DNA of 63,883 bases, filler included, from Choristocarpus tenellus KU-1152 (Eukaryota; Protista; Phaeophyceae), in assembly GCA_964200185.2 (NCBI GenBank). It is 9 parts of 9 records of this genome, joined end to end, with 100 filler letters (N's around TTAATTAATTAA, not from the genome) between each part and the next. Parts side by side here need not be neighbours in the genome. Positions count along the whole stretch, not along the records: positions 41,842 to 51,621 come from CAXNAD020003396.1; 8 more parts are not named here. One strand, given 5' to 3'. Below the pieces are notes generated by a model that worked only from the letters and a program-made list of their open reading frames with translations, had not been told where the DNA came from and ran no database searches. A program made the position numbers and the translations under genes. Below, one piece after another: positions 5,601 to 52,367 of the stretch. Position 1 is the stretch's first letter; each line of letters starts with the position of its first letter.

Positions 5601-7074
5601 GGCAACAAGTGGCAGGCAACAGCTAAGCACCAATCACAATCCCACCCCGAAAGTCGCTCACCTGGTGCAAATTCATCATTCCACTGCCTCCATCTCCTGA
5701 GCCCCGCAAACTAGTCGTGATGCTGGGTGCGGCTAGTGCGAGGAAGCAAACCAGCACCCTCCCAAAAGGACTTCCTGGGGTGACCTCCCAAAGTGTACCC
5801 TAGAGTGTAGAGGGGTGGATATAGTGGCCGACGGAGGACATACAAGTGTGACAAGAATGAGGGAGACGAGGCTCGTTCTGGCAGAAGGTCGAGCTCTAAG
5901 GCACTGGTGAATCAGTAATGTTATGGGCAGCAGCAAACAGTGAAGAAAGCTAACCACTCTCCCCTACGAGTGAAATTGCTTCGATTAGACCCTAGCCTCG
6001 AGGAGAGCGGAGGACCAAATAAAGGATATTTCGTCTTGAGAGCCATTACAATCCAGTTCACATCACCTTCTCGCCCTCAACTTTGATCAGCCCGTCAGTC
6101 TCCCAGACCCCCAACACGGCACCAGGTCCACCGAGGATAAATGCGCACATAGCTGCTCTGCCGAGATGTCCATTCAGTACAGAATCCTGGGATCCGACCT
6201 ACAGGCGTGACGAAGATGCCAAGATAACGGCGGCATTGAAGGTGTAAAGAGAGAGGAAATAAGAAATATTTAGGGCCCTGGAAACACTAATGGTGGAAAC
6301 CATGCAATCATAAAACAAGGGGATCATACAGATGTCATGAGCAATCAGTGCGAACTCACTCACAGTTGCAAGAACAACCACCGTCAGGTACGCGGCATCG
6401 AGGTACCCCCTGCCTTCAACAATCCAGACCGAAGCCGATCCCAGTAAGATGTAACTCCCCAGCTCTGCAAGAGACCAACAGTAGCCAGGCGCACAAGATA
6501 GGCACGGCAACGGGAGCAACCTAATAGCAAAGAAAATCCGGAAGGGGGAATGCTTTCATTTAACAACGCGATTGACGTGTTGAGGATCGACCATGAATCC
6601 CTCTTTTCAATGATTCCACATTCTACGCTTCGGTTTCATATTTTTCGAATACTCCTGCTATGAAGGCCTTACGCACTCACCTCAAGATCCTGTGTAATGC
6701 GACCGTCACTACCACCCAGCAACACCGTGCCCCCATTACACCAATCAACAATAACCTAGCGTTGCGGGCAAGGCCCTCGAGTGGCGGAAGCCTTGACCAT
6801 AAATTCATAAGAAAACATATTTCAATTGCGCAGAGAAAAGCAGCATGGGCTTTGCCCCCATTCAGGTCCAGCATGTTTTGAGTCTGGTGGTGCTGTGTTT
6901 GCCTTATCTTTGGTCGTGTGTTTGGCTTATTTTGAACATCACTCATGTACATACTTTTTTTATAAATTGAACTGTTGTCAGAAATAACGTATAATAATAT
7001 TTTTATTTTTTGTTACTGATGTACTCAGGGTCATCGAGTCAATATCACCTTCAACGATGAGTGTCAACAACTAA

Positions 7075-7555: not shown

Positions 7556-10500
7556 GTCACCAGCACCACTAACATCACTGTATTTTTAATATTGCTTTGT
7601 CGTTTTCTTTCTCTTTTTGGATTTATTTTCTTCCACTCATTGTTCATCTTCCTCTTTCTTCTCTTTCCCTTGTGCTATTTCTTGGTAGAATAACACAGTA
7701 GTCCTTTTTCTTCCATTTTTTTTTTCTTTTCACAGTCGTTTGTGCCGTTCCTCGTTTCAACCCTTGCGTATTGCCTTCTTTCGACTACTTTATTCAACCA
7801 CAAGTCTGGGATCCCTAGGGTCAGTTAGAAATGTGGGGAATGACGGACTCCCAAAGGTGTTGATATTTGGGAAACTTACATATAGAAAGTGGAAAAAATC
7901 TTGGCAGGAGAAAAGCACTGGTGTGTGTGTCTGTAAGACGACCTTCGCAGGTTTAGCATCACTGTCAAGGGGTGAAGTACGAGGGCAAAAAACAACACAG
8001 GTGATATTTTGTGTTACGTATGTGTGGTTGATGAAACAAGTGGAATGCGAGGGGAGTCGTGGTAGGTGGTGTACGTCATGCTGAAGCTGCAGCTATGGCA
8101 ACCCAAGCAGAATAGGAGTAAGGTCTTAAGGTGGTGAAGATCTTTCCCTTATTAGTATGTGGGCAATGAATGTGATGGGTGAAGTGCGATTTTGCTAGTT
8201 GATACAATTGTAAGATTAGGACTTAACGCTTAGGGTACTGTTTCTCTCATTACTCCATGGGTGTCCAATTCACGTTGAACATTGTGAGGGACCCTAACTC
8301 TACACTACCTGATGCTTTCGAAATGTCTCTATTGCATTGGACAGCGGACGAAATACAGCTTTAAGGGATCAAAGTGCTTCATCCCTGCCGGAGAGATGTT
8401 CCTGTGGGATGAGGAGGTACAGGCCAAAAAAATATCGTGAATGAATGGGAGTCAGCTGTGTACCGCTGTGCTTGGGCAAAGAATCCCCTGTGCGGTATCT
8501 AAATTTCATTGTGTGTAAGGCCTACGCCCCCAACCCAGTGGTCAATGATGCAGGTACCAGGCACTATAAGAAATTGTTGCGTTGGGTCGGGTAGCACTGT
8601 AAGGGTTAGTTGCCGTAGTTTGAAGGTTGACTGGTATGGGGGTCACCTGCCAAGATGATGGATACATGCTGCTTCAGGGATACTGTAGTGATACTGCAGT
8701 GATACTGCAGTGGATCGTGAAAGCTTAATCAGTATATAACTTGTTGTAGTGCAGGTGTGTGAGCAGCAACAGTACACTTGAGTAGAGTGTGGAAGTTAAT
8801 TGATTCCCCATGTCTTGTTGTATAGGAAAGAGTTAAAGATATGAAGGGGATGATCGATGCTTCGTGTGTATCACTGTGCAGAAAAGTTAAGAAATGCATG
8901 GGATAGGCGCTACTTATTTTGTAGTGCCGTATGAGTGATGCTCGATATAGTCCTGATGTATCAAAAGGTTTGTGGGCACACAGCGGGGTTTCATAAGCGT
9001 AAGTGTCAAACATCACCCTAATCCTATGTGCCCGTTTTGCCAAGTGTATAGTAGAGGTAAGTGTATGAATGGGAAAGGTGGTAAGAGATTAGTGTTGCTG
9101 TGCGAAAGGGGTAAGGTCATGAATGACACTAGGGAGTAGTACACTGCAGAGCGGGGGTGAATTTATCCGCCAATGAGTGGCACTTAGCGCGTATTGCTGT
9201 GCAGAAGAGGTGAAGGTATGGACAAGGGAGGAGGAAGTTCATATTAATATATGTGGGAAATAGGTTGTAGTATGAGTGGGCTGATTGGAACTTGATATGT
9301 GCAGCTGTCGAATATAGGTGAAGCTAAAAATTAATTGAGTGCTCCTCAATGCGTGTTGTTGTGATATCCACTACTTTTGGTACAGTTGCGAGAGAAGATG
9401 CTAGGGGACGGATGGGCTGAGTTGCACTTAATGCCTATATAGGTGTAGAATACGGGGGGGAGTGTGAATGGGGTTATTCCCATTTGATCTGCAATGTTGC
9501 GCAAACAGGGCAAAGACATGCATGGCATTAGGGGAAAAAACGAATATTGGTGCACAGAAAGGGATAAGAGTAGGAATGGGTTAGTGGTACTGGATTGGTG
9601 TTGTAAATAAATGTAGAAGACCAGAAGTACATGGAGGAAATTGGGGAAAAACATGAGTGAAGGTAGATATCAATGAGTCGTACTTGATGTGTATCACTTT
9701 GCAAAAGAAGTCAAGGTATAAGCATGAGAGGTCGTAGTAAACCTGTGCGAATATGCGAAAAAGGTTGTGGTATGATTAAGCTGAGTAGAAGTGATGTATA
9801 CAACGGAGTATAAATTACATTAGTCATAGTCGGTATATCGCTCCATAGAGAGGTTGAGTTCTGGGTGGGATAAAGTGTTACAGGCGAAAAGCGCGAGCAT
9901 TTCTTTCTGCGTGCCAAAATGCGCGAACAGTATGCATTCGTAAGAATTCATATAAGAGGAACTTTGAATTGATAGAAGACGCAGAGTAAGATTCGAAATG
10001 CATACATAACCTTACAGAGTAGACATCAATTCCTGAAAGTTGGAGAACAAATTTTTATGATTGGAGTATTTACACAGCAGTTGGCAGACGTCGTTTAACT
10101 CTTTGGCTGTAGAAAAACGGCGAATGACGTTAATAACAGGCCGACTTGTTGTGGACCACACGACTCAGTTCTTTGATCCTTACCCTCTTTTGAAAAAGCA
10201 AAAAGCGAGACATCGACTGAGCTAAGCATCAACTGACACCATACGTGGTCATCATCTGTAGACCCCATCAGCGTCGTTTTAAGGTCGTTGGGTTTGAGTT
10301 GCACATCCTGTCTGTGGAGGTGAGTGCTGGAGCGTGCTGTAACATAAGTGGGAGTTTACGTACAGATGTGTAGAAAGGAGGATGTCTGAAAGAGGTGAGT
10401 GCCATCATACATCACACCAATTGCTCCACAGGAGGTTAAGGTATGAATGAATTGGATGATTGGCAATTAATCCATAATGTTGCACAAATGGGGTTGAAGA

Positions 10501-41741: not shown

Positions 41742-42049
41742 NNNNNNNNNNNNNNNNNNNNNNNNNNNNNNNNNNNNNNNNNNNNTTAATTAATTAANNN
41801 NNNNNNNNNNNNNNNNNNNNNNNNNNNNNNNNNNNNNNNNNCCAACCAGTCCCCAACAAGAAAAACTGAAAAAAAGTATAAAATAACCCAATTCATCCAA
41901 ACACAAAGTGAAATCAAGTATAGAAAGCCTGAAATGCATGCATAGCAACAACTCCAGAAGGGACAAACCGAAAGTCAGAAACAGGTGAAATGAATCTCCA
42001 ATATGCACTGCAGACGTGATACAGTCAACTCCTTTTAATTTCACTTTGC

Positions 42050-42950
42050 ACCACCAAACAAATTCACCACCACAATAATATCAAATCAAATGTCTTCCTC
42101 AAAATCAAATCATGCCATCATTCTACAAAACCCTCTCGTTATTTAATAAGTTAATGTACCCCTGGTCTTGATGAACTCAAGTGGATAAAAAAATCAGGAC
42201 ACACTTGACACAATTGTCATGAACCTATAAAATAAAAATAAATTGGAGAACTTGCAACATGAAAGTCAGAACTACTAAGTAAACCAACCCAAATTCTTTG
42301 AAAGGTTGCAAAATCAATCTTTATGACAATGTTAAAACACATATCCTACCCAATCTCAAGATTAATGTTTCATAAGCATGGAAATCCAGTAAACCAACTT
42401 TTGACACCACTTTCCACTATAACAACTCATTTGCACAAAAATAAAATATAGCAGTAGCAAGCCTTCCTTAATGACACAATATACTATCATTCTACTAAAT
42501 TCAATCTTGTTACTTATCGGTTACCTTTTTCAACAAGATAACATCAGTCAGCTGTTCATGAAAGGGACAGTAGGAGAAGTTCCACAAAAGTTTAGAAATA
42601 GATCTAGTGATGTCTCACGAGGTATAATTTTTTTCAATATCAATATTAAAGGTTGTAACCCCTTTAGAGGGTTTATACTTATAGAACCTGTACAACAGAT
42701 ACATTCAAAGATTACAGGAAAGTAGATGTCGCATTGCACTGCCAACACAACAGTTTCACCTTGTTTGACATGCTACTATTTCTTATAGAGAGTATCTTCA
42801 TATCAAGAACATGCAATTTCCTCAAGTAAAATTTCGGGAATCAAAAGTTTGGAGGGTAGAAACAGAATTGACTAACTCTCCGTTTAATCCATATAATGTC
42901 AACAGTGCATCGTGTCAAATACAATTCAAAAATTACCCTCACACTCTCCT
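42050..42950 (-). mobile_element. Possible very old copia RT/RNaseH remnant
   Basis: Only scattered motif-like traces, such as LYGL at ~42885, with no open frame. Confidence 0.25.
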
Positions 42951-43187
42951 CCATTTTCTCAAATCTTAGCTCTCTACCCGACTTAGAAATCAACATTCTC
43001 AGATATTCTAATTAGACAGTAAGATTAAAAATAAAATAATATCAATATCACCTTATTACCCCTTGTAGAATCCTTAATGAACACATGGTTGGTAAGAAAT
43101 ATCCCTAACAGTACAATAATCCATAAATAAAAATACATAATATGTTGGATTAAAGGGTAGGTTCTCTTTCGTATCAAATTAAATGTA

Positions 43188-43368
43188 CCAAAAAAATATA
43201 TAGACTCTTCCAAGACATATATTAACCCTAACCCTAACCCTATAGCGAAAAGATATATAAAATCTTCCAAGACATATTAACCCTAACCCTGACCCTAACC
43301 CTATAGCGAAAAGATATATAGAATCTTCCAAGACATATTAACTCTAACCCTAACCTTAACCCTATATA
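43188..43368. repeat. ~60-bp tandem repeat x3, each unit containing 3-4 AACCCT telomeric units
   Basis: aaaagatatata..tcttccaagacatatt(aaccct)n atagcg repeated three times. Confidence 0.92.
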
Positions 43369-43470
43369 TTATATATATATCTTATGCTAAGAGTAGTTTA
43401 TCCTTAGGATAAGTTAGAAATCAAACAAAATTCGCCATTGATAGTGACCATAACAGAAACGGTTGCATAC

Positions 43471-44564
43471 CTTCAGATACGAAGTGACAGCAGCATCTTC
43501 TGCATCACCCTCCCAGTTTCCCTCCTTCCAGATACCTTTCCATTTCCCAACAGCATCTTCCAAATGCAAATACGGCAACATCGTTTGACCTTCAACCTTG
43601 GCATGTGACACCTCACCCGGTTTGAGTGCTGCCATCATGGGATCCAATCCATCACGTAGGGCAACCATCACAGCAGATGATCTTGCCCATCCCATTGGGA
43701 TAACCTTACCCACAGTGGGAAACAAGCGAGTTCCATCCGGGCCAGGTCTAACTCCATGCATCACAAGCTCCACAATCTTCTTTCGAATAGCATCCATCCT
43801 TTCTCCTCCTGACCAGCATGATACAACCATCACTCCTAGGATGTAAAGATCCGCAGGTGGTTGAACCTCCTTGATTTTATCCACACCCAACTCCTTCTGC
43901 CGCTTAGAAAATATATTTTCCATCTCTTCACGTTTGACTTTCAAATGTTTACCAATAAAAAGATCAAGCTTCTTCATCGCACATTCAACCTCATCATCAC
44001 CCTTCATACAGTCGATATGCGTCCCAACAACCAAAACAGAGGAACCAGGCACCTTGCACAGCAGCAGATCAAGCCAGCTGCAGACAAGCTTACCTTTGTC
44101 TGACTCTTCATGATAGAACTTGTAAAGATCAACCACAAGAAGGTTTAAGGCGCCCATAGTAAGAAAAAATGGACGCATGGAGTCGTACTCCTTGTGTGCG
44201 CCAAAGTCCCACATCATCAATTCTAGCAGCTCTTCACCATTCGGCTTCCAGGAGTGTACATCTACTCCACGAGTGCGATCTTCAAGAGTGGTCAAATAGG
44301 GCCGTCCATCCAACAAACTCCGGGCAAGGCTAGTCTTGCCTGCAAAAATCTCGCCAACAAGAACCACCTTCAGCCTGTAGGACTTAGACGACCCAGAAAG
44401 TTCAACAGCCTCGTAATATCGAACAATTGCCTCCAAACCAACCGACACAACCTCTGTTGGAGGACTAACCCATGGGTTGAGGGAAAAAAAATGGCTTATT
44501 GCTGCCCCCTTACAAAAAAAATACATGCATGACATAAGCTGTATTGCTGCCTCCTTCGAGAAAA
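43471..44564 (-). CDS. ROCO Roc GTPase exon (Roc domain and start of COR)
   Basis: 373-aa ORF 43414..44535 carries the G1-G5 motifs. A phase-1 acceptor ttttttcttatcag| at 44564 is in frame; the donor is at 43471. Confidence 0.93.
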
Positions 44565-47500
44565 CTGATAAGAAAAAAGTAAAATATAACCGACACGGAA
44601 GGAGGAGACATTAAGAGTTAGATGAAAGATTATAAAGCAATGACACAAAACAAAGAGTTATAAAAAGAACTTCCACCGCATTCAACATCTTCCCAACTTC
44701 ATATACTACATAATATATTTCTTAACTGTAGAATTATTATTAGCAAGTATCACCGACAAAATATTGTCCAACTAAGAAATAACCACAAATATCAATCAGG
44801 AGTGGATTGACAAAGGATGCAAAACGAAAAACACATCTATTCTTACAATCACAAATTCTCAATCACCTTCTATCCTCAGACTAACCAAACATCTTCAACA
44901 CACCTATCCACAACAACACCATACACAAACGAAAGCAAAAAAAAGGACTTACCACAAAACAAAATACCTCCTCAACTATCCTGCCCTGACTAATACAACA
45001 ACTAATATGCCTACACTCTTGTCTACTACAAATATCACCTCCAGGTACACAACAACCCTCATGCGCACTACATACATCACTCTCCTGTCAACACATCTAA
45101 TTGTCACACTAATCAATATCAAACCATCATACTGCTCTATTACTGATAAGAAATTGGATTCGATCATCTCTAAATTGCACCAGTCCAACATTCTTAGGGC
45201 ACACATCAAAAATATAGATTTTTGACCACACTAGGGTACTTCAACAGGAAACCAAAAAAGAAGACGATACCTTACAATTCAACAAATGTCCAACTTCACA
45301 CTCACCGCTGAGTTGATTTCGTCCCAGATATAGCTCCTGGACACCAAAGAGATTCCCCAGTGTCTCCGGAACGCTCCCTGTGAGGAAAAGAGTTGATTTA
45401 CAAAAACCATTCAAGTTTTGCAACACACAAACAACCATCAGTCCAGAGTGGAATAACAAAGCATGCAAAACGAGAAACACATTTATTCTTACAATCACAA
45501 ATTCTCAATCACCTTTTATCCTCAGACTAACTAAACACTTATTCTCAACAACGCCATACACAAACAAGAGCAAAAAGAGGGACCTACCACAAAACAAAGT
45601 ACCTCCTCAACTATCCTGCCCTCAATAATACAACCACAACTAATATGCCTACACTCTTGTCCACTACAAACATCACGTCCAGGTGCACAACAACCCTCAT
45701 GCGCAAAACACACATCACTCTCCTGTCAACACATCTAATGGTCACACTAATCAATATCAAACCAACCATCATACTGCTCTTATTACTGATAAGAAATTGG
45801 ATTCGATCTCTAAATTGCACCAGTCCAACATTCTTAGGGCACACATCAAAAATATAGATTTTTGACCACACTAGGGTACTTCAACAGGAAACCAAAAAAG
45901 AAGACGATACCTTCAAATTCAACAAATGTCCAACTTTACACTCACCGCTGAGTTCATTGTCGTCCAAACATAGGTCCGTGAGAGCAGAGAGATTCCCCAG
46001 TGACTCCGGGATGGATCCTGTGAGGAAAAAGTTGATTTACGAAAGCCATTCAGGTTTCACAGTACACAAACAACCATGAGTGGGGTGACAAAGCATGCAA
46101 AACGAAAAACACATCTATTCTAACAATCACAAATTCTCAATCACCTTCTATCCTCAGACTAACCAAACATCTTCAACACACCTATCAACAACAACGCCAT
46201 ACACAAACGAAAGCAAAAAGAGGGACCTACCACAAAACAAAATACCTTCTCAACTATCCTGCCCTGATTAATACAACCACAATATGCCTACACTCTTGTC
46301 CACTACAAACATCACCTCCAGGTACACAACAACCATCATGCGCACTACATACATCACTCTCCTGTTAACACATCTAATTGTCACACTAATCAATATCAAA
46401 CCAATCATGGTCTTGCCATAGCAATGATAAGAAATTGGATTCAATCATTTCTATATTGCACGAGTCCAACATTCTTAGGGCACATATCAGAAAAATATAC
46501 ATTTTTGACCACACTAGGGTACTTCAACAGGATACCAAAAATGAAGAATATACCTTACAATTCAACAAATGTCCAACTTCACACTCACCGCTAAATTTAT
46601 TGTATCCCAAATTTAGGTAACTGAGAGCGGAGAGATTCCCAAGTGACTCCGGGATTGTCCCTGAGGAAAAGAGTTGATTTACGAAAGCCATTCAGGTTTC
46701 ACAACACACAAACAACCATTAGTCCAGAGTGGGATGACAAAGCATGCAAAACAAAAAACACATCTATTCTTATAATCACAAATTCTCAATCACCTTTTAT
46801 CCTCAAACTAACTAAATATCTTCCAACTAACCTATCCACAACAACGCCATACACAAACGAAAGCAAAAAAAAGGACTTACCACAAAACAAAATACCTCCT
46901 CAACTATCCTGCACTCAATAATACAACCACAACTAATATGCCTACACTCTTGTCCACTACATACATCACCTCCAGGTACACAATAACCCTCATGCGCACT
47001 ACATACATCACTCTCCTGTCAACACATCTGATTGTCACACTAATCAATATCAAACCATGGTCTTCTTCTAGCAATGATAAAAAAAATTGAATTCAATCAT
47101 CTCTAAATTGCACCAGTCCAATATTCTTAGGGCACACATCAAAAATATAGATTCTTGACCACACTAGGGTACTTCAACAGGAAACCAAAAAAGAAGACGA
47201 TACCTTCAAATTCAACAAATGTCCAACTTCACACTCACCGCTAAATTTATTGTGTCTCAAAACTAGGTAAATTAGAGCAGAGAGATTACCCAGTGACTCC
47301 GGGATGCTCCCTGTGAGGAAAAGAGTTGATTTACGAAAGCCATTCAGGTTTCACAATACACAAACAACCATTAGTCCAGAGTGGGGTGACAAAGCATGCA
47401 AAACGAAAAACACATCTATTCTTACGATCACAAATTCTCAAATCACCTTCTATCCTCAGACTAACTAAACATCTTCAACACACCTATCAACAACAACACC

Positions 47501-50479
47501 ATACACAAACGAGAGCAAAAAGAGGAACCTACCACAAAACAAAGTACCCCCTCAACTATACTGCCCTGACTAATACAACCACAACTACTATGCCTACACT
47601 CTTGTCCACTACAAACATCACCTCCAGGTACACAACAACCCTTATGCGCACTACATACATCACTCTCCTGTCAACACATCTAATTGTCACACTAATCAAT
47701 ATCAAACCAATCATGGTCTTGACCTAGTACTGACAAGAGATTGGATTCGATCATCTCTAAATTGCACCAGTCCAACATTCTTAGGGCACACATCAAAAAT
47801 ATACATTTTTGACCACACTAGGGTACTCAAACAGGAAACCAAAAAAACAGAAGATACCTTCAAATTCAACAAATGTCCAACTTCACACTCACCGCTGAGT
47901 TCATTGGTCATCAAAATTAGGAACTTGAGAGAAGAGAGATTCCCCAGTGACTCCGGGATGGCTCCTGTGAGGAAAAGAGTTGATTTACGAAAGCCATTCA
48001 GGTTTCACAACACACAAACAACCATTAGTCCAGAGTGGGGTGACAAAGCATGCAAAACGAAAACACATCTATTCTTACAATCACAAATTCTCAATCACCT
48101 TTTATCCTCAGACTAAACTAAACATCTTTAACACACCTATCCACAACAACGCCATACACAAACGAGAGCAAAAAGAGGGACCTACCTCAAAACAAAATAC
48201 CTTCTCAACTATCCTGCCCTGACTAATACAACCACAACTACTATGCCTAAACTCCTGTACATTCATGAGCAACAAATAAATATTAATGAAAACAAAAAAA
48301 AATCACAAAATTAGTTACTTGAACATGGTTTACTCACTGCACAGTTCATATGAAAAAGTGACACTTCTCACAATATATATTCTAGAAACACTATCAACGG
48401 GAGTGTATCACCTCAAACATAAAAGTTTTCAACACAAATTAAAACAAAAAATCTTAAAGTGCCACTAAAATGCATTCTTTTTTTCACAAATAAAAATTTA
48501 TTTGTGTTCTATTTATTTTAATGGTTAGCTTTCACTACACACTAAAATACAGTTAATCATACCAAGAGCACCTTTGATCACATATGGCAACAAATTCAAA
48601 AATAAATTATGTTGGCGAGAAAATCAAAAATCTCTCCACAGAAAGCTAAAATGATACTATTTAACCTAACTTACCTAAATTGTATCAATTGATATCAGTG
48701 CAAATCTACATGTTCCTATAACTCGACCACTTCAGAAGCATAGCCGCACTTGTTATGTTCCTCTATTGGTTTTGTAATCCCTACTGGACTCCTAATATTT
48801 AGAAACACCCTTCATGTTGCCATTTCTCAACATGTGGTGCCAGTGACTTATCAAAGAATACAGAAACTATAGAACATTTTGTTTTGGGATACTGAAGGGC
48901 AGAAAAATATCATATTTTCAACTGGGCACTATAGTGTGAGGTTTAAACGTAGCAATGCTGGTCTGATTCTTAAGTGCCAGACATAAACATTCTGTTTGCA
49001 ATCATATTAGGGTATGCAATAAAGTAAATATGATCAAATCAATTCATAGAGATTTCAAGAAACTTGAAATATGACAAATCTAAACGACAAGCCAGAGATA
49101 AGCTGGTAATCAATGCCTTTCAACAGATGCTCTAAAAAATTTCATCTCAATTACCAATCCCTCGGAGAGGATGGTATGCTTTTGCTCATTCACTGATTTA
49201 ACAAAAATAATAATTTATACTCTGCTTTCAGCAATATATTATGTACACAGAACATTTTAAAGTAGAAAAGGTTTTGTTGAGGGAGTGTAGCAGAATTCAT
49301 CTCAGGAAGTTACAATTTGCACAGAAATATGTTTTATCGGATTTTGAATACATGTGCCAACATATTTCACTTGTAAACATCACATAAACACAAACAGGAT
49401 AAAGAATGGAACACCAATCTACCGGTACTGCATGTTCTGTCCGAATCATTCTGTTCACAAATACTTTAGTGCAAGAGGTTACTCGCAATCACCACTTCAA
49501 GATGGGGTAATCTAAAGCATAAACCAAAGCCTGACGGACGCTTTTCAGAGATAGATGTCAAAGCTGAGACACACCCAACCAATCACAACGACAAAATGGT
49601 CCAGTTCTCGCACAGCTTCGCTCTTGTACAGTTTTGTCTACCCCACCTCAAAAGACCTTTCGATATAGGTTGTGTTCCATCTACCTTCACAAGAATCCCC
49701 AAAATCAAACCTTTGAAGACGAGCCCTTGCGTCATCGTAAAAATCAATTTCTTGTCACTTACAAAAGGAGTCGAGGTGCCATATTCCCCTACAAATGTTA
49801 ACACACGCCTCATCGTTGACCTTCAAAAACGGCAGAAGTCAAATATGACCTCATGTACACATACCACATTCTTTCCTAGGACCACTAATGCGGACAAAAC
49901 CTCGACCAATACTATTTGACGTTAACCTCACAGCCACTGTCCAATGTGTCAACACACATGCACGAATGCTTAGTGTAAACTCCTTGATCATTCACATCTG
50001 TAAAACACCTCTACGAGCAAGTCAACACTATTGCGCCCTTCGATATACACATCACAAATTTGAAGCCAACCATACAAGAAGCCACCAGGAAATGGACGTG
50101 CACCACACAAAATTGGAATGTAAAACACCACAGTCAAAACTTACCCTTGAGATTGTTCTTGTTGAGGTTTATCTTCACCACGTACCCTTCATCGTCGACT
50201 TCAACCCCGTACCACGTTGACAGATCATCAGCATTGGAGTTCCACCCGGTATTATTCTTCCACAGATGTCCATTCGTGGAGACATAGAATTCAAGAAGAA
50301 TCTCCCGTTGCGCGACTGTAGTCGAGAAGCGAAGGGCAACAAGCGACAAATGCGACACCAAATTTATTAGTTGCTGTTCTCTGTTTGGCATTTTCATTCT
50401 CAACCCATCACCGAAAACACCATGAAAACAACTCACCTGCTCTCCGGAATGATTCCAACCTGCTAGTCGCCGTCGCCAT
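43471..50479 (-). CDS. LRR-ROCO (Roc-COR) GTPase, multi-exon, 3' partial. Exons 50479-50437, 50315-50145, 47964-47893, 47310-47239, 46660-46589, 46017-45946, 45377-45306, 44564-43471
   Basis: The spliced model reads MATATSRLESFRRA|VAQREILLEFYVSTNGHLWKNNTGW...LSTWYGVEVDDEGYVVKINLNKNNLKG (LRR N-cap), then five 24-aa LRRs, then NPWVSPP...LKVVLVGEIFAGKTS (P-loop), RTRGVDV (G2), WDFGAH (G3 variant), VGTHID (G4), VSC (G5) and IPMGW (start of COR). All junctions are GT-AG and phase-compatible (phase 1 until the Roc exon, which ends AAG|GTATGC). Downstream COR exons were not found before the gap. Confidence 0.93.
45306..45377 (-). CDS. ROCO 72-nt LRR exon 5: (G)SVPETLGNLFGVQELYLGRNQLS
   Basis: cctcacag| 72 nt |gtgagt, phase 1/1. 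Also visible in ORF 45241..45498. Confidence 0.92.
45946..46017 (-). CDS. ROCO 72-nt LRR exon 4: (G)SIPESLGNLSALTDLCLDDNELS
   Basis: cctcacag| 72 nt |gtgagt, phase 1/1. Confidence 0.92.
46589..46660 (-). CDS. ROCO 72-nt LRR exon 3: (G)TIPESLGNLSALSYLNLGYNKFS
   Basis: ttttcctcag| 72 nt |gtgagt, phase 1/1. The acceptor has lost 2 nt relative to the other units but retains CAG. Confidence 0.92.
47239..47310 (-). CDS. ROCO 72-nt LRR exon 2: (G)SIPESLGNLSALIYLVLRHNKFS
   Basis: cctcacag| 72 nt |gtgagt, phase 1/1. Confidence 0.92.
47893..47964 (-). CDS. ROCO 72-nt LRR exon 1: (G)AIPESLGNLSSLKFLILMTNELS
   Basis: cctcacag| 72 nt |gtgagt, phase 1/1, LxxLxLxxNxLxGxIPxxLGxL consensus. Confidence 0.92.
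50145..50315 (-). CDS. ROCO exon 2: LRR N-terminal cap plus first partial LRR
   Basis: Acceptor ...gactacag| and donor AAG G|gtaagt, 171 nt. Translates to AQREILLEFYVSTNGHLWKNNTGWNSNADDLSTWYGVEVDDEGYVVKINLNKNNLK. Confidence 0.9.
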
Positions 50480-50704
50480 GACCGCCCGTGAACGAGGACA
50501 ATCACACGCCCCAGGACGACAACAAACGCAATTTGAGTATAATCTACTTGTTGTATTTACCTCTTTGGCACATGATAACCATCTACCATCGATGAGTGAG
50601 TGTCGTGTGAGTAAGGTGAAAAATTCGTCACTGAAAGATGAATTGCCAAGACAAAAAATATATACTAAAAATAATAATATTTCAATCCTTCAAACTCTCT
50701 ATAA

Positions 50705-50970
50705 ACACCTCACCTCTCCAACCAAAGGGAAAGTTTATGAAGTAATATGAGTTTTGTAGATGATATCAAGGAGGGAAGGAAGAGTTCAGATTGAGGGGTT
50801 AAGAAAATAGGTGGCAGATGGAGGCACAAGGGGAGAAGGAATGAACAGTATTGAATCGAATGAAGAATCCTGAGGCTGGGGGACAAGACGAGGAGGGCTA
50901 GATCAAGAGGAACCTCGAATAAGCTTCCGTCGGAATGGATCAAGGAAGAACCAGAGCAATCTTCTCTACA
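50705..50970 (-). repeat. Dispersed repeat homologous to 63230-63550, just upstream of the ROCO start codon
   Basis: The reverse complement aligns by eye with 63230-63550, e.g. acaaaactcatattacttcataaactttc vs acaaaactcagattacttcataaactttc. Confidence 0.7.
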
Positions 50971-52367
50971 CCTAACCCATATTGTACTTATTCGACCACA
51001 ACCTTGATAGAAGATTATATAATTTCACTTTCAACTTTAAAGGCCTCCACCATTCCTCTATGACCCCTTCAGCAGACAAATCAAGAAGTTTATGGAAATG
51101 AACTCCATGACGCTGGCTAATGAGATGAATCAATGACATATTGTTCCTGCCAATAAACTACCACCAACCAAAACGAACAAGGATATTCTAAAGATATTGG
51201 GGAAGCCGTCCATTATTTGACAGAAAAGTACAGCTTCTCAATTCTGTGCCAAATACTCGTAAACACATGATGTGAATATTTTCCGTTCGTGGGATCTACA
51301 CCCATGGATACTATGTGGAACATGAATTGCAAATAAAGATATACTTGCTAAATTCTCCACCTAACCCTAACTCTAACCCTAACCCTAAAATGGTATCTTG
51401 ACTGCATTTAATCATTAGTTCCTCTAAAACATCACTCTCTTGGTTGAGAGGAGATGGGGCAGCCACAAATCGTGCAAGAATGAACAAATCCGTTGAGAGA
51501 AGGCGATTGAATGGTGGGAACGTATTCATAAAAAGACAAAAGGGTCAAAGTATCTGGGGGGGGGGGGTGACGACTGTCCATTTGGGGCCATTTTTTTCAT
51601 GTCGCGATTTTTTGTTGGTTTNNNNNNNNNNNNNNNNNNNNNNNNNNNNNNNNNNNNNNNNNNNNTTAATTAATTAANNNNNNNNNNNNNNNNNNNNNNN
51701 NNNNNNNNNNNNNNNNNNNNNGTGTAGATGTTCTCCCCTACAGTCCTTCTGATATACTGAAGAGTTCAATATATGTGCATCCACATATACCTGCTGTCAT
51801 CACTTTTTCTTTTTTAGTGATTATAGTTCTTGAGTTGGGGGGAGATTTATGTCAACTTCAAATAATGTTGAGGGAGTGGTGTCTTCAAATGGTTGGGATT
51901 TATATTTTGTTATGCCATTGCAAATGTTAAGCGAAAGACACGATCTATCCCTGTCAAACCTACACACTTGTTTAGTGCGGGGTGACTGCCTGAACCTTGG
52001 TGCATTCATACATGTGCCTTGTTCATCTGTCAACGCACCCGTGGTTGTATCATGGAAGATCATATGTCTGAGGGGAGTGCTCTGGGAGGTTTTTCGATTC
52101 ATGTTCACGTTTTTCTGGTGGTGATGATCGAGGTTATCTACTCGAGGAAAAACATGTCTTGGAATAGTTCCATCAATTTGATTGGTTTTGTCGTTCCCAC
52201 AGCTTGGTACAGTAACCCCTTCCACCTAATGCCCTTCCCCCTGTACACTGTAATCGTTAGATTTCGTGCTCATCGCTGTTTATGTAGTTGGGCAGATTCG
52301 TTTATATAAAATATTTGAGCATAGATATGGTGGTAATATCCTCCTATTATTTGTCAATGTGCAACCA

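Follow-up and report, generated by a model that had tools for sequence, protein, structure and literature searches.

Tandem intron and exon cassettes with divergent LRR exons in an LRR-ROCO gene of the brown alga Choristocarpus tenellus

Introduction

An LRR-ROCO gene of Choristocarpus tenellus raises the question of how a gene comes to have LRR exons that differ far more from each other than do the introns around them, the inverse of what is seen in normal genes. The original prediction had answered it with homogenised introns that act as recombination arms swapping variable exons, in a repertoire-generating system loosely analogous to lamprey VLR assembly. From the sequence, we consider it likely that this is a candidate ligand-sensing or defence GTPase, a type-I-exon LRR-ROCO gene shaped by inherited cassette turnover and diversifying selection. 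Ligand binding and an immune role are candidate functions of this gene, taken from the literature.

Genes of this kind have been described before. In Ectocarpus, Zambounis et al. (2012; PMC3341825) reported ROCO genes with one LRR per 72-nt exon and exon shuffling, as the prediction had noted, together with inactivated and inverted exons, homologous fragments rearranged between recent paralogues, and positive selection on the concave face. The same study drew the analogy with jawless-fish receptors and, while leaving the mechanism uninvestigated, made the case for targeted somatic recombination rather than simple homologous recombination. The exon structure and four selected sites (14, 16, 18, and 19) were confirmed in Saccharina and other species (Teng et al., 2024; PMC11378527). 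The 72-nt-exon ROCOs, the selected sites, and the VLR analogy were thus known already; the features that set the C. tenellus array apart are the regularity and the orientation of its exons.

Gene structure

The window, i.e., the whole stretch of DNA that was analysed, is 63,883 nt long. Positions 41842-51621 comprise the whole 9,780-nt contig CAXNAD020003396.1 of C. tenellus assembly GCA_964200185.2, and this contig, whose record reads as the reverse complement of the piece, carries the gene (L001) on the minus strand, in the order N-cap exon, five 72-nt LRR exons in intron+exon cassettes of ~645 bp, and Roc exon. The exons were searched and examined singly, not as a joined spliced model. The predicted first coding exon (50437-50479, minus strand, 43 nt) starts with ATG, has an open frame and ends in a phase-1 GT donor that fits the phase of exon 2; its start and splice sites are preserved in the paralogues L009 and L002. 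The LRR N-terminal cap exon follows at 50145-50315 (minus strand, 171 nt, phase 1/1). It has homologues in P0173 and P0174, and the NCBI model of P0174 has the cap spliced to the first LRR exon. At the end of the N-cap (approximately 50160-50175), the final strand, equivalent to LRR sites 18-19, varies among paralogues (NK, PK, PE), while elsewhere this exon is ~97% identical among them.

The tandem array spans about 44785 to 48261 on the minus strand and contains ~5.4 cassettes arranged head-to-tail with a period of 635-654 bp; both its ends are intronic. The five predicted LRR exons, all on the minus strand with AG/GT borders and phase 1/1, are located at 47893-47964 (exon 1), 47239-47310 (exon 2), 46589-46660 (exon 3), 45946-46017 (exon 4), and 45306-45377 (exon 5). 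The predicted design of five units with one LRR exon apiece was thus borne out. Exons 2 and 3 have weak LRR_8 matches, exons 3 and 4 are within the NCBI model P0001, and exon 5 is both the last and the most divergent, with at least 18 differences to every other exon. Each exon encodes one 24-aa LRR of the form GxxPxxL...LxxLxLxxNxL with equal phase on both sides, which fits the published type I definition. By its sequence, the gene belongs to the brown-algal LRR-ROCO type I exon class. Every intron up to the Roc exon is in phase 1, so gain or loss of any LRR exon leaves the frame intact.

The Roc exon (43471-44564, minus strand) is a stop-free stretch of 1094 nt that encodes a capping LRR, the Roc GTPase, and the start of a post-Roc (COR-like) region. 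Its Pfam Roc match (1.5e-13) confirms the assignment to LRR-ROCO genes; it also matches LRRK2 and Chlorobium Roco in PDB, the best matches are brown-algal ROCOs, and the NCBI protein P0001 is a 100% match. As for the region downstream of Roc, the C-terminal part from a paralogue shares 37% identity with a full-length ROCO of Cladosiphon without having a Pfam COR match, which is usually absent in brown-algal ROCOs. The G3 motif at 44194-44211 (minus strand) is WDFGAH, with DxxA for DxxG. The DxxA-H variant is present in all five proteins of the C. tenellus subfamily, while other brown-algal ROCOs have WDFAGH; judging from the motif, GTP hydrolysis is possibly altered or lost.

The intron after the Roc exon (41842-43470, minus strand) runs to the contig end, before the last large coding exon that is present in paralogues; in the colinear locus L008, the next exon begins ~200 nt past this point. 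This intron contains three 61-bp tandem units with telomere-like CCCTAA runs (43186-43366), whose copy number appears different in paralogues, and a further, short run of CCCTAA precedes the gene (51360-51388). The search of Rfam matched no family. A candidate cassette remnant in the last intron, within its unique tail, scored no better than shuffled sequences (p about 0.2) and was rejected.

Divergence of introns and exons

Among the five units, pairwise divergence is 6.9-10.6% in introns and 15-33% in exons, with mean identities of ~92% and 75%, respectively. To call the introns near-identical was therefore an overstatement; still, the predicted inversion of conservation holds on alignment, as 83 of 495 intron sites and 33 of 72 exon sites are segregating (Fisher p=1.6e-7). 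The exon differences are concentrated in codons 13, 14, 16, 18, and 19, where 14 of 15 sites segregate. The predicted counts proved exact: exons 4 and 5 differ at 20 of 72 nucleotides, and exons 1 and 4 at 12 of 72, all in amino-acid-changing codons and 10 of them in the same five codons. Introns more alike than exons reportedly have a precedent in the lettuce RGC2 genes.

The most extreme intron pair belongs to the last two units. The claimed identity of 45171-45273 and 45811-45913 (103 of 103 nt) is in fact part of an exact match of 108 nt between the introns that follow exons 5 and 4 (45166-45273 and 45806-45913, respectively). It begins about 32 nt from the donor, stays outside the exon, and is significant in a Sawyer-type permutation test (0/2000, p<0.0005), while PHI-like recombination tests were marginal (p 0.04-0.08). 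We read it as a gene-conversion tract, with a local mis-assembly as the alternative.

A more distant C. tenellus ROCO (L004 2580-6045) has an older six-unit array whose intron shows weak homology to the one studied here (E about 3e-6, 3' part). In that array, introns and exons have decayed alike, with divergence of 20-38% and 15-39%, respectively, so the inverted conservation is a property of young arrays. Judging from these comparisons, our gene would come from a young subfamily of LRR-ROCO genes, whose flanks are 4-16% divergent.

Youth could, in principle, explain the intron similarity by itself, if a recent burst of tandem cassette duplication had been followed by positive selection with little ongoing conversion. 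The divergence of the flanks and the decay of introns in L004 are consistent with such a burst, as is a star-like intron tree with near-equal distances. However, the significant tract shared by units 4 and 5 speaks against it, and so do two observations described below, namely the synonymous excess beside the selected sites and the behaviour of the last units. Overall, we consider the burst rather unlikely.

Selection on the concave face

The prediction of diversifying selection on the x positions of the concave face was upheld. For sites 14, 16, 18, and 19, fixed beforehand from the published set (PMC11378527), the codon model on 20 exons yielded dN/dS of about 4.7 versus 0.65 elsewhere (LRT 44, with an optimistic p-value, as recombination can inflate dN/dS and the tree was built on the same 69-nt exons). 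Pairwise counts on the five exons of our gene gave dN/dS of 2.2. Over all 20 exons, the structural residues P, L, G, L, L, and N are invariant and the x positions of LxxLxLxxN vary.

Strict synonymous divergence is 0.11 in codons 2-11, which is intron-like, and 0.36 in codons 12-23 (LRT p=0.018). This excess fits selected sites shielding their neighbours from homogenisation; the alternative is local mutagenesis.

Hypervariability is not confined to cassettes. The Roc exon contains one copy of the capping LRR, which lies outside any cassette, and yet the hypervariable strand of this LRR (approximately 44475-44520, minus strand), which carries an 18-nt in-frame insertion, has a diversity of 0.45 versus 0.05-0.14 in the Roc-coding remainder (five paralogues).

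Paralogues and cassette turnover

The cassette is also present on four further contigs of the assembly (L003, L009, L002, and L005). L003 has four units, our gene five, and L009 seven, and the array ends match between these genes. This means that the copy number changes inside the array, and the intron+exon cassette is the unit of gain and loss, as had been supposed. L005 has one unit, interrupted by the contig end, and L002 has two units and an orphan in a rearranged, frameshifted copy.

Several peculiarities of these paralogues were recorded. In L009, the in-array LRR exon of unit 3 (6245-6316) has an open frame and a donor changed from GT to TT, and is probably skipped; the orphan exon of L002 (3806-3877) likewise has an open frame and a dead donor. 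In the rearranged region of L002 (1831-6262), there are two 5' gene ends, one older (79% identity) and one inverted and upstream of two cassettes (94%), as well as the orphan fragment of a cassette. The hypervariable strand of the capping LRR is interrupted in L002, at the start of the Roc exon (about 8340-8375), by 16 inserted nucleotides of telomere-like TAACCC sequence, and the 18-nt insertion of our gene is near the equivalent site; together, they are perhaps a trace of breaks repaired here.

Given the broken L002 and the non-canonical G3 motif, some copies may be decaying. One could go further and regard the whole pattern as neutral decay or an assembly artefact, that is, a pseudogene array or collapsed reads, the more so as the assembly is fragmented. 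This is extremely unlikely: the exons of our gene are all open, in phase and bounded by canonical splice sites, the structural residues are retained while the x sites vary, the units differ by about 7-11%, and the same design recurs on four other contigs.

In the tree of 19 cassette introns, the five introns of our gene form one side of a branch (support 92/88), and so do the seven introns of L009 (94/96; label shuffles 0/500), with both branches below the strict cut-off of 95/80. The introns of L002 and L003 do not cluster by gene. The intron distance is 0.099 within genes and 0.107 between genes (permutation p=0.046), so the clustering is weak in absolute terms. Positional orthology is rejected both when the last units are forced together (AU p=9e-5) and when the first units are (5e-5). 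In particular, a unique 3' junction is common to the last units of the different genes, and yet the intron bodies of these units do not group, contrary to what a simple burst of duplication would leave. With the introns grouping by gene and positional orthology rejected, we conclude that cassettes have turned over within genes since the genes diverged, most likely, as far as the sequences tell, by unequal crossing-over and conversion.

Possible exchange of exons between genes

For most exons, the closest relative is an exon of another gene; the introns, by contrast, show a tendency to cluster gene by gene. Such a pattern would be expected if exons were exchanged between loci. The decoupling of exon and intron genealogies is suggestive but non-significant (Mantel r=0.21, p=0.13), with low power for 72 nt, as most 72-column intron windows are also non-significant.

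The contrast between exons and introns nevertheless agrees with programmed, possibly somatic, repertoire generation, proposed by Zambounis et al. (2012), where introns would be homology arms for copying variable exons, silent donors included, comparable to VLR assembly or VSG switching. The two open-frame exons with dead donors, in L009 and L002, could be counted in its favour, and the raised synonymous divergence by the variable strand could reflect local mutagenesis. The remaining observations point the other way. Any two of the 20 exons differ by at least 5 nucleotides, so that there is no near-identical donor and recipient pair among them and no trace of recent donor copying. Crudely tested, the exons have no C>T/G>A excess of the kind expected as a deaminase signature (5/33 at variable codons versus 89/316 in introns). 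No inverted repeats of at least 25 nt were found, which also leaves a MITE-type origin of the cassette unsupported. Cassette introns are no more conserved than ordinary introns, as they differ by ~10% between genes, versus 9% for the unique part of intron 2 between L001 and L009. Finally, the capping LRR has become hypervariable outside any cassette, and the decoupling is low-powered and non-significant. Hence, we regard programmed repertoire generation as very unlikely. Very unlikely, too, is its more specific form, in which, while a thallus lives, homologous recombination via the shared intron would rearrange LRR cassettes or copy them from one locus to another; exons with dead donors would serve as a silent reserve, and break-induced mutagenesis might also act on the binding strand.

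The idea of introns as recombination arms therefore survives in part. Recombination within introns is supported by the conversion-like tract and by the rejection of positional orthology; the introns as the source of variability, or as special arms for swapping exons, are not, given the hypervariable capping LRR and the ordinary level of intron conservation.

Discussion

In our preferred explanation, whole LRRs would be added or deleted as misaligned cassettes undergo unequal crossing-over and gene conversion, both of the ordinary, inherited kind. The same processes would homogenise the introns, while diversifying selection would keep and accumulate point changes on the binding strand and resist homogenisation there. 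The inverted conservation would then result from homogenising recombination and diversifying selection acting together. Cassette turnover plus selection would thus be a sufficient explanation for at least one ROCO subfamily, and the gene would resemble other genes with repeat exons, on which concerted evolution acts together with diversifying selection, rather than an antibody-like system.

How LRR exons are shuffled in brown algae was left open in 2012, and a young, regular array provides direct sequence evidence for the sufficiency of cassette turnover plus selection. Moreover, unique flanks and units divergent by about 7-11% make this locus an easy long-read target for the question of germline versus somatic change. 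If somatic change were true, it would mean a repertoire-generating receptor system in an alga.

Comparison with known systems

Like other brown-algal LRR-ROCOs, the gene has an N-cap, LRRs, and Roc, with one 24-aa LRR per 72-nt exon and codons at nt 3-71. Also shared are selection at sites 14, 16, 18, and 19, an LRR number varying between recent paralogues, inactivated exons, and rearranged homologous fragments in the LRR region. It differs from them in the regular head-to-tail cassettes that include the whole intron, and in the G3 motif (DFGAH versus DFAGH). Across six C. tenellus loci, a small sample found via similarity to our gene, the 26 LRR exons are without exception sense and head-to-tail. 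By contrast, loci of Laminaria digitata (L006 3155-7391) and Ectocarpus sp. 6 (L010 1064-9646) have 7 sense and 10 antisense, and 7 sense and 6 antisense LRR exons, respectively, with short duplicated fragments in both orientations. In these two loci, the LRR exons alternate between the strands, and the flanks of the fragments are in many cases better conserved than the exons. Antisense exons are common but not universal: antisense intronic LRR exons are found at 19 Ectocarpus loci, and a Pylaiella locus has none; membership of the class does not depend on them. The inversion of conservation is not unique to C. tenellus, as Laminaria flanks, too, are more conserved than exons (12/72 differences versus 3/80 and 3/71).

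In lampreys and hagfish, the germline VLR gene is incomplete and is filled somatically from flanking cassettes with the participation of a deaminase, and there are no introns between the assembled LRRs. Our gene shares with VLRs the 24-aa LRR modules and the variable concave face (PMC3341825). Unlike them, it already has five predicted spliceable LRR exons in place in the genome, and no deaminase signature was found. The testable features of a VLR-like system thus appear to be absent from the sequence of this gene; the analogy suggested in the original prediction, itself published in 2012 (PMC3341825), finds no support here.

Closer parallels are found elsewhere. The LRR genes of Tetrahymena have arrays of exon/intron repeats that expand by unequal crossing-over (PMC6564038). 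As in C. tenellus, there is one LRR per exon, a single intron phase, tandem exon/intron units with copy-number variation, and exons closer to those of other genes; the differences are an exon length of 90 bp instead of 72, thousands of genes, and an association with a retrotransposon, of which there is no sign here. In the MaSp2 silk genes of Argiope (PMC9779670), introns are homogenised within a gene and have been proposed to guide unequal crossing-over, although silk exons are homogenised as well. In the SSSGP genes of the Hessian fly (PMC2955719), the repeats are whole genes rather than single-repeat exons; still, they have the same combination of conserved introns and non-coding regions with hypervariable coding sequence, which has been ascribed to positive selection and concerted homogenisation.
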